NCBI RefSeq assembly: GCF_001194135.2
Contig: NC_068985.1
Coordinates: 26,823,976-26,858,175, forward strand
Origin: Octopus bimaculoides
Lineage: Eukaryota
Reading direction: 5' to 3'
Length of the DNA: 34,200 nt
Shown here: positions 5,452 to 8,400 of the stretch, piece by piece
How the letters are laid out: each line of letters starts with the position of its first letter
How positions within the stretch are numbered: the first letter of the stretch is position 1
Position numbers and translations under genes: made by a program
The notes under the pieces: generated by a model
Databases searched by the model: none
What the model was told of the DNA's origin: nothing
The model's input: only the letters and a program-made list of their open reading frames with translations

Positions 5452-8400
5452 CTTTGAAAGTTTGGTGTTAAAGATCAAATAGGTTTGGATTTTATTTTCA
5501 TACATGGAAAATTGAAAAAAATACACACACATACACATACCTACACTGTTTCTATTTCACACACACACACACACACCAGAGTACGCGAGACTTTCTTTTG
5601 ACTTGGCCGCATTAAAAGTTCTTGAAAATAAATATAGTCGTCTTGATAGGCCTATTGTATATACCGGTTGTTATTTCATCAAACTTGTTAAAATAAAAGA
5701 AAAAGTCGGCCTTTTTTTTCTTTTTACAAAAAGCAATAGCCGTCACTCGCAAGCGAATGTGGCCAGGTAGCATGTAAGTGTTTTAGGTTCTTATGTAACA
5801 CCTAAAACAATTAGTGAGCAGACACAAGGGCACCCTCACAACTTTTCCACCCGTTGACCAAGCGGCTCAAAGATTCTATGTTGAAAGCAAATCTTTTATA
5901 TTATTAACCCACAACATCTCACTCTCCAAATCACAACGGCGATTAATATACCACTAACCATAAACCTGACACAGAAAATACACGATGACTTCAACAACAA
6001 CAACAACAACAACAACAACAACAACAGCAGCAAGAACAGCAACAAAATACTAGGGATTACAAACTTCACCACAGCATTCACACAAAAACATTAAAGAAAG
6101 CAGAACAACGCACATATATTTAAAATAACCACATTAGGTCAACAGAATAGCCCTTACAGCCCCTAACGTTACATTAAAAAAAAAACCTACCACAAAACAC
6201 CCAGACAACATATGCAACACTTCAGAGCATTTCCGATAAGTATAAGGAACACGTTCAAATAGAAATAACTTACACATCAGTAGATTCACTGGCCTCGAAT
6301 ACTACGCTGGAATGCACACTACTAATGTTGAGTGCAACTGTAGCGCTATGGCTGAGTTCATTTTGATCGTCTTTGCTGTGACCGCCACCAGAATCTCTGA
6401 GTGTACAGAAACAGATTTGATTGTGGAAAAAATGCAACATGTCCACACTGTTACATTGCACCCCATAAAATTTATCAGTGTATATCAGATTGTGAAATAG
6501 GATCTTCAGTTAGACGCAGATATCTTAAAGCTGCAAAGACGGATATGTGGATTACGCTTTACCATTCGGTCAAATAACTGAGTGCTACATAACTGCCTGA
6601 TCCAGCTGACTGGGATTTACACAGCAGTAACAACAACTACTGCAACATTACTAGTGCTATTGCTCTGCCTAGACTGCCTAGTCTGCCTGGTCCGCCAAGT
6701 CTTATTCGTTTAAAAGTCTTCAAAATATTTTACATCAAAAGGATACCGACTAAGAAAAGAACTGTACCAAATATACATAACGTCAAACGAAAATGACAGA
6801 GGACGTGTGTAGATCCAGGCAGGCGTGTTCGATAAGATATTATCGTTTGAGTCCATCCATATCCCAGAGTTCCAAGAGCAAATGCTAGGACAGCACCGAC
6901 AACATGTCCCACGAGAACATTAGATTCCTGCAAAATACAAATATAAAGAATATTTCACACATTAAAATATATATTCAGAATTGCTAAACAGTGATTTGTT
7001 AACTTAGAAGTAAAAACTAGAACTACGAAATTTTATGTGATACTACTTTCCTTACTGAAAATACATTATTGAAGATTTGATGTCCAAGTGTACCTTAAAT
7101 CCTGCATTTTGAGAGGAAGGACTGAAAGCAGCCTATTTCACCTTGAAACATTTTGCGCGGAAACCCTAAGTCCTGGGTCAAGCGACGCATCTAGAATGCT
7201 GTCAAGCCCTCAAAATTCTTTTCTTGCAGGATATTCGATAGAAGGCTTGTGGTGAGCAAGGATAGTAATGATGCTCTCTGTGAGATTCTGAGCAGCGAGA
7301 ATGATCAACAGGTTAGTCTATCCCAGAGAACCTTCGTCCTGACGACTATGGACAACTTCCAGAAATCTCTGGCCTGGAAAAACGACCAGAGAATACTACC
7401 ATTTAGGGATAAATTCGGTATCTCCGCCAGCCAGGCCTATCTGAAATGCTTGCAGAATGACAAAACTGTTCTGCAAGCACTTGTTCAGCGTCCGAACATT
7501 ACTGACTTGTGAAGTTATGCCAAGCAGTTGCTGTCACATATAGTACGGATCAAATTATCAGTCAAGCCCATTGTGAGGATCACTCTTCAGCCTTCTTTTC
7601 GAGAAGGGCAGACAGTTTCTTCATCGACGTCTTCAAATTTCACTTGGAGAAATGTAAGGGCGGAGAAATACTGTTCTCCTGTGGGTTTGCTGAAAGGTAG
7701 GCTCACAGTCGCAAGAACGGCCCAAATAAATGGGCTTATATATATATATATATATATATATATATATATATATGTGTGTGTGTGTGTGTGTGTGTGTGTG
7801 TGTGTGTGTGTGTGTGTGTGTGTGTATGTATGTATATGTATATGTATGTGTGTATGTGTATGTATGTATGTATGCATCCTTTCAGGAAATATGTTAACCT
7901 TTGTTCTATAAGGTCATAAAAACCCTAACGAAGTTCTGCCCCATATAGTTAAAAATGATACCATTCTTAGCATATAACCAAATACTTAGAATTACATATC
8001 AGCTAGGGGCTAGAACAGGAAACATATATGTTGTTTCTTTTCCGCATCTCCCATTTCTTTTTGAGCTTTACAACTTATGATTTACTTTTATTGTTATTTT
8101 TAAAAAGTTTCAACTTCTTTATATCATACAAATAAATTATTCACACATCCATATATCCCTATCTTCTTTCTTTCGATATATATATATATATATATATATA
8201 TAGATAGATATTTATATACCTCTCTGTANNNNNNNNNNNNNNNNNNNNNNNNNNNNNNNNNNNNNNNNNNNNNNNNNNNNNNNNNNNNNNNNNNNNNNNN
8301 NNNNNNNNNNNNNNNNNNNNNNNNNNNNNNNNNNNNNNNNNNNNNNNNNNNNNNNNNNNNNNNNNNNNNNNNNNNNNNNNNNNNNNNNNNNNNNNNNNNN

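Follow-up and report, generated by a model that had tools for sequence, protein, structure and literature searches.

Does a DRAM-like gene of the octopus Octopus bimaculoides, from a family of autophagy/lysosome membrane proteins, carry an intron of the rare minor, U12-dependent class, and, if so, is it the intron known from the DRAM genes of vertebrates? The question was raised by a first reading of a 34,200-nucleotide (nt) stretch of forward-strand DNA (NCBI RefSeq assembly GCF_001194135.2, contig NC_068985.1, positions 26,823,976 to 26,858,175; hereafter the window), made from the letters alone and referred to below as the original prediction. Four DRAM/Frag1-family exons of this minus-strand gene were recognised in the window, and all gene coordinates are given as minus-strand positions. 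Our analysis makes it very probable that positions 6746 to 5452 are a GT-AG U12-type intron of this DRAM/Frag1-family gene and that the intron is orthologous to the minor intron of vertebrate DRAM2; orthology to the minor introns of DRAM1 and TMEM150A-C is something that we infer. The observations that carry this reading are the splice signals themselves, how seldom they occur in the window, the homology of the exons on either side, and the conservation of donor motif, codon and phase in molluscs, a spider and mammals.

The intron and its splice signals

The intron is 1,295 nt long, has GT-AG termini, interrupts the reading frame in phase 1, and contains no DRAM-like coding segment. Its 5' splice site is the U12-type GTATCCTTTT (6746-6737; 12-mer with exon context TCG|GTATCCTTT, the preceding exon ending in ...GTC G), and a branch-point-like motif, TCTTTAAC (5474-5467; 12-mer TGATCTTTAACA), stands near its other end, with a putative branch adenosine at 5468. 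From this adenosine to the G at 5452 of the 3' splice site AG (5453-5452; caaAG|G) the distance is 16 nt, and this AG is the first after the branch motif. The donor, branch motif, AG and spacing given in the original prediction were thus all found in the sequence, and its remark on the acceptor was borne out as well: pyrimidines make up only 12 of the final 20 nt ahead of the AG (longest run, 5), as opposed to 19/20 and 15/20 at the two upstream U2-type acceptors. Likewise, the remaining splice sites of the gene in the window (three donors and two acceptors) are U2-type, in agreement with what had been said of the upstream introns and of the donor at 5374 (donors GTAAGT, GTAAGT and GTTAGT).

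The exon upstream of the intron (6927-6747; 181 nt, phase 1 end) encodes ESNVLVGH...CIFGTVLFLV plus the first base of a Gly codon (G), its sequence being ESNVLVGHVVGAVLAFALG...CHFRLTLCIFGTVLFLV and one base. The downstream exon (5451-5375; 77 nt) encodes (G)ITASHLSFKKKKFITSAKHWKPTDE, ...KHWKPTDE; it closes in phase 0, where the U2-type donor GAG|GTTAGT (5374) follows. The G at 6747 and the GA at 5451-5450 make up a Gly codon within a transmembrane segment. The 158-residue spliced product matches the Pfam family PF10277 (Frag1/DRAM/Sfk1) with 91.1 bits (cut-off, 30.3), and this match is unbroken across the junction: residues 1-142 correspond to profile positions 45-186 of 220, and the junction falls at residue 133. 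An exhaustive HMMER search returned 422 homologues at E<=1e-3, all of them animal DRAM-like proteins. If the intron were retained, the reading would be GGT ATC CTT TTG ATG TAA, which is the G-I-L-L-M-stop that had been foreseen; because this stop follows after five codons and lies >50 nt upstream of the next junction, an intron-retaining transcript is predicted to be truncated or, if exported, a target of nonsense-mediated decay.

To score the signals against chance, position weight matrices (PWMs) were derived from human entries in one part of Table S2 of Olthof et al. 2019 (79 genes, DRAM1 and DRAM2 having been added), the 5' splice site PWM being built from 46 human GT-type minor 5' splice sites; the matrices are therefore approximate and human-derived, and come from an organism other than that of the window. 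The donor 12-mer reached 13.6 bits and ranked first among the 4,041 GT sites in the window, the next best scoring 9.3 bits. The branch 12-mer TGATCTTTAACA reached 8.3 bits (15th percentile of the 79 human branch point sequences), and a motif as good is found 8-23 nt upstream of only 12 of the 3,574 AGs in the window (0.34%). Both scores fall inside the range of validated human minor introns, so that the U12 scoring proposed with the original prediction came out in its favor, and the core CTTTAAC is shared with the catalogued minor introns of HSBP1, PPME1, and GMFB. The string RTATCCTT on its own is not enriched, occurring twice in 68 kb (both strands), about as often as expected; the case therefore rests on placement, joint signals, and conservation. 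Taken together, donor and branch signals that bracket precisely an in-frame junction of homologous exons are far beyond chance.

Based on established minor splicing, U11 small nuclear RNA (snRNA) would pair with the donor GTATCCTTT, and U12 snRNA would pair with TCTTTAAC, with the branch adenosine (5468 or a neighbouring position) bulged out. The AG that comes first, 16 nt on (5453-5452), would then be used without a polypyrimidine tract, a U2AF-type tract being unneeded, and splicing would join G(6747) to GA(5451-5450), yielding the Gly codon of the transmembrane segment. Excision by the minor spliceosome and use of the 5452 acceptor in RNA are what we infer from the DNA. The throttling of DRAM expression by this intron, which the original prediction had suggested, is hypothetical and a generic idea about minor introns.

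Two microsatellites, (GTT)n at 5990-6035 and (GT)n at 5555-5585, lie within the minor intron, and nothing coding or structured was detected at either. Rfam at gathering thresholds gave zero matches in the window, and an snRNA was not expected within 34 kb.

The same codon and phase in other invertebrates

A related Logan genomic contig, probably from a cephalopod (L001), carries an orthologous exon whose protein is 89% identical to that of the octopus. At the nucleotide level, the 6927-6747 exon is 73% identical to its counterpart in this contig, with differences at 36 of 60 third positions; the codon differences amount to 31 synonymous versus 7 non-synonymous ones, which indicates purifying selection. 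Within the intron, the first 10 bases (GTATCCTTTT) are identical in the two, and positions +11 to +200 show ~49% identity, i.e., background.

Several deposited sequences run through this donor. Among the 150 best homologues, 9 gene models or open reading frames (ORFs) do so, each showing the tripeptide [G/S]-I-L at the homologous position, a tail that results from phase-1 translation of xGT ATC CTT. Models with such a spurious S/G-I-L tail include Lottia L007:328-1229 (KB202249.1), P0092, P0133, P0140, P0109, P0128, P0078, and P0042. The DNA could be recovered for 5 of the 9 read-through models, L001 among them; contig look-ups for the read-through fragments P0042, P0078, P0109, and P0023 found none on record. 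At the same codon and in phase 1, N|GTATCCTT is present in L001, L007 (Lottia gigantea), L011 (the spider Trichonephila clavipes), and the eukaryotic loci L008, L009, and L010. For the spider locus, the downstream exon was not identified within 6 kb of AT-rich intronic sequence.

Short exons homologous to octopus 5451-5375 are present in Lottia and in L009 (74-77 nt, phase 0 end). More specifically, the Lottia intron ends with TTCCTTAAC 11 nt ahead of the first AG, followed by the exon (M)NIFTALSMQKFKGDMKHWTPNQT|GTGAGT, ...KHWTPNQT, and that of L009 ends with ACTTAAC 12 nt ahead of the AG, followed by (M)FIFGSLSFKLYDGDDPRKWTPERA|GTGAGT, ...RKWTPERA. Three independent genomes thus share one module, consisting of a phase-1 U12 donor, a branch site near the first AG, an exon of ~75 nt, and a phase-0 U2 donor. 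A close comparison is with Lottia gigantea (KB202249.1), likewise a mollusc. Its donor, A|GTATCCTTTTC, falls at the same codon and in the same phase, its intron measures ~1.25 kb with a branch site ahead of the first AG, and the short exon homologous to that of the octopus closes with ...KHWTPNQT|GTGAGT. Unlike in the octopus, the TTCCTTAAC of Lottia is perfect and stands 11 nt from the AG. The deposited Lottia gene model runs through the donor without splicing.

One locus departs from this pattern: L012:2590-2630 (Joint Genome Institute [JGI] metagenome 3300013296, contig Ga0157374_10044570), likewise from a eukaryote, has at this codon and in this phase the U2-type donor TCA A|GTGAGCTG (A|GTGAGC). 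The read-through fragments P0023 (S-N-S), P0033, and P0132 hint at a U2-type donor of the same kind. These sequences suggest that the DRAM-family intron may have been converted from U12 to U2 type in some lineages. The L012 locus also bears on whether the octopus intron could be removed by the major (U2-dependent) spliceosome, its likeness to U12 introns being incidental. The octopus termini are GT-AG, as that explanation would have it, and L012 indicates that the position itself carries no requirement for the minor spliceosome. However, GTATCC is a poor U1 site and a pyrimidine tract is lacking, the bases TATCCTT after the GT have been kept from mammals to molluscs and a spider when the neighbouring intron sequence has not, and the branch motif stands at a U12-typical distance in three independent species. 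We therefore regard removal by the major spliceosome as extremely improbable, and consider the intron as U12-type in what follows.

Relation to the minor introns of vertebrate DRAM and TMEM150 genes

The original prediction had named DRAM1 and DRAM2 as minor-intron genes, and the supplementary tables of Olthof et al. 2019 (PMC6717393) confirm this status, listing TMEM150A/B/C as well. The DRAM2 minor intron has the 5' splice site GCA|GTATCCTT(T/C) and the branch point sequence TCTTCCTTGACT, and that of DRAM1 has CCA|GTATCCTTT and TTTCCTTAAC (PMC6717393). DRAM1 and TMEM150A/B/C, which belong to PF10277, resemble the octopus gene in being catalogued minor-intron genes with GTATCCTTT donors, a comparison that extends to the exonic triplets given in the table.

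The codon at which human DRAM2 is interrupted follows from two retinopathy variants, the splice variant c.518-1G>A at the exon 7 acceptor and p.Trp165* in exon 6 (PMC9266529). Their placement puts the exon 6/7 junction at c.517|518, so that codon 173 is split after its first base (phase 1). We take the residues at this junction to be S172-M173. The human DRAM2 protein sequence behind this numbering was checked only against the PMC9266529 variant table, where it agrees with 15/15 residue numbers, and AGC+A at S172-M173 matches the catalogued DRAM2 exonic triplet GCA. In a MAFFT alignment, a single column holds the split Gly of the octopus, the split Met of Lottia, human M173, and, in a DRAM1-like protein of a vertebrate (P0087), the Met that follows ...IAFIP, and the alignment is ungapped from this shared split-codon column back to an invariant Arg 14 residues upstream. 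The DRAM1 triplet CCA, known from the table's three exonic bases, is compatible with Pro(CCC)+A(TG) at this column of P0087. Conservation of position and phase, which the original prediction expected for vertebrates and molluscs, thus held for human DRAM2 and Lottia (same column, phase 1), and reached as far as a fit of the triplet for DRAM1.

Intron 6 of human and mouse DRAM2 (MIDB / Olthof et al. 2019) shares with the octopus intron the protein family, the alignment column, phase 1, the GT-AG subtype, and the donor GTATCCTT; in both genes it interrupts the first codon after ...S/V of a transmembrane segment, and the exon after it is short (83 nt in human DRAM2, 77 nt in the octopus), ending in phase 0 just before G-Y/F-x-x-H. 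The two differ in the exonic -1 base (G in the octopus versus A in vertebrate DRAM2), in the branch site (TCTTTAAC versus TCCTTGAC), and in intron length (1,295 nt versus 556 and 740 nt for DRAM2 of human and mouse, respectively). Alternative splicing is documented for Dram2. A vertebrate DRAM2-like protein (P0045; 268 aa) joins ...VIWCG straight to GYVLH... and lacks the residues encoded in the neighbourhood of the minor intron; this isoform seems to arise from an alternative 5' site further upstream together with skipping of the short exon, and it agrees with published accounts of alternative splicing near this intron of Dram2 (PMC6717393, PMC10853781). On a wider scale, a pan-eukaryotic survey of minor introns in >3,000 genomes found molluscs to be relatively enriched and included Octopus sinensis in its conservation matrix (PMC10639083).

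Choice of the 3' splice site

The AG at 5453-5452, from which the original prediction let the downstream exon begin, is present, but it is not strictly unique because a second in-frame AG (ttacAG|CA) lies at 5444-5443, 9 nt downstream of 5452 and 25 nt from the branch adenosine. With the same U12-type donor, this second AG could serve as the 3' site, exclusively or alternatively, and the product would then read V-A-SHLS instead of V-G-ITA-SHLS, losing Gly-Ile-Thr, creating an Ala, and being three residues shorter. The second AG keeps the frame, and its local context (ttACAG) is better than that of the first (caaAG). The stretch from the junction to the conserved HW motif varies among homologues from 16 to 20 residues, and the minor 3' site of human DRAM2 is reported to be shared by alternative 5' sites (PMC10853781), which indicates that splice-site choice in the family is flexible. 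On the other hand, the 25 nt that separate 5444-5443 from the branch adenosine contrast with the 11-12 nt found in Lottia and L009, the AG is not the first past the branch site, and its use would remove three residues of a transmembrane segment. The 5452 acceptor, in contrast, aligns without gaps (x-ITASH-LS in the octopus, M-NIFTA-LS in Lottia, and M-FIFGS-LS in L009). Judging from the sequence, the AG at 5453-5452 is very likely the acceptor in use, and a role for 5444-5443 is unlikely.

Points against the reading and integrity of the gene copy

Several findings weigh against a conserved U12-type intron in an intact gene. The donor stands only at the 17th percentile of the human donors on which the PWM was trained, as few human minor 5' splice sites have G at -1, and TCTTTAAC fits TCCTTAAC at 7 of 8 positions, leaving one mismatch. 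The octopus branch-to-AG distance of 16 nt exceeds the 11-12 nt of Lottia and L009, and the codon numbering of human DRAM2 depends on a protein sequence checked only indirectly, against the 15 residue numbers of PMC9266529. A protein search with the two central exons recovered two genomic read-through fragments only and no transcript-derived protein. Finally, a tblastn search with 150 DRAM homologues yielded neither a C-terminal exon in 1-5374 nor a first exon beyond 22334, the segments sought being M...PYI(S) for the first exon and ...SEW...EF... for the terminal exon or exons, which bears on whether the gene is whole.

As the introns within the window measure 1.3, 3.8, and 11.4 kb, missing end exons are expected beyond its borders, and the absent first and terminal exons most likely sit outside it; an assembly gap could also hide exon 1. 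A match to YITSAICEW at 26347-26321 was considered as a DRAM exon and rejected, for it lies inside a retroelement-like ORF resembling that at 1700-3100.

The missing exons, together with introns rich in transposon fragments and assembly gaps, would also be compatible with a decaying or untranscribed gene copy whose splice signals are relics. Yet the four exons are all open with mutually consistent phases, the excess of synonymous over non-synonymous codon differences to the L001 orthologue is that of a coding sequence under selection, and introns of 1-11 kb make it expected that the remaining exons fall outside the window. The probability that the locus is a relic is accordingly very small in our estimate.

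Other features of the window

The two remaining DRAM-family exons lie further upstream in the gene. The first of them, (S)DTGTYPPESCVFGQLLNILALL (also read SDTGTYPPESCVFGQLLNILALL; 22334-22267), starts in phase 2 and ends in phase 1, with the acceptor ttctttgcag upstream and the U2-type donor TAA|GTAAGT (22266). The second, (I)GMTLYIRFRQ...GVSIVANFQ (10834-10689), has the acceptor tttcttttttag and the U2-type donor CAA|GTAAGT (10688). The 11.4-kb intron between these two exons contains a mariner/Tc1-type transposase fragment on the plus strand (14401-14769; PF01359, E=5e-10).

Related retroelement-like ORF fragments occur on the minus strand at 1715-3141 and 26280-26640 (…LIRRLQIQSITGTVKICKTFQKF / …LIRTLQVQSVSGAVKICKTFLKL), with no Pfam match; one of the two yielded the misleading 'SAICEW' match to DRAM1. 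Repeat units resembling short interspersed nuclear elements (SINEs) are found at 9790-10330, 8610-8670, and 150-270 and read, on the minus strand, ...AAGTCGATTA(A/T)ATCGACCCCAGTGCGTAAC...GAAAGGCAAAGTCGACC(T/C)CGGCGGAATTTGAACTCAGAAC; three tandem copies of these units are located in the 3.8-kb intron. Runs of N, which mark assembly gaps, occupy 940-1035, 8228-8493, 9337-9346, ~11400-12150, ~12810-13200, ~23000-23200, ~24050-24400, and ~26720-27100. Given these numerous runs and the microsatellites that flank them, the scaffold is of draft quality.

Implications for the DRAM/TMEM150 family

The octopus intron is a true case of an ancient intron that has been conserved, though an expected one, and its surprise value is low; our literature search found no text discussing this specific intron. 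Knowledge of minor splicing and of DRAM function is unchanged by the finding. What it adds is a clean invertebrate orthologue of a minor intron catalogued in all five human DRAM/TMEM150 genes. The type, codon position, and phase of this intron have been kept since before the split of protostomes and deuterostomes, and in at least one lineage (L012) the site now carries a donor of U2 type.

A further idea concerns the 3' end of the intron, which might be a regulated decision point, with two in-frame AGs 9 nt apart (5452 and 5443) and retention leading to an immediate stop. We hold this to be unlikely. If true, a regulated 3' end could let cephalopods tune DRAM dosage or make an isoform with or without Gly-Ile-Thr in a transmembrane helix, and it would parallel what has been reported near the DRAM2 minor intron of human and mouse, namely dual U2/U12 usage and exon skipping.

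The value of the intron lies mainly in annotation, as gene predictors run through or mis-splice the U12 donor, and read-through at this intron recurs as a systematic error of annotation. Searching for the [GS]IL tail at the homologous position could help to locate the intron in other taxa, and the locus can be used as a marker when minor-intron retention is studied in cephalopods.

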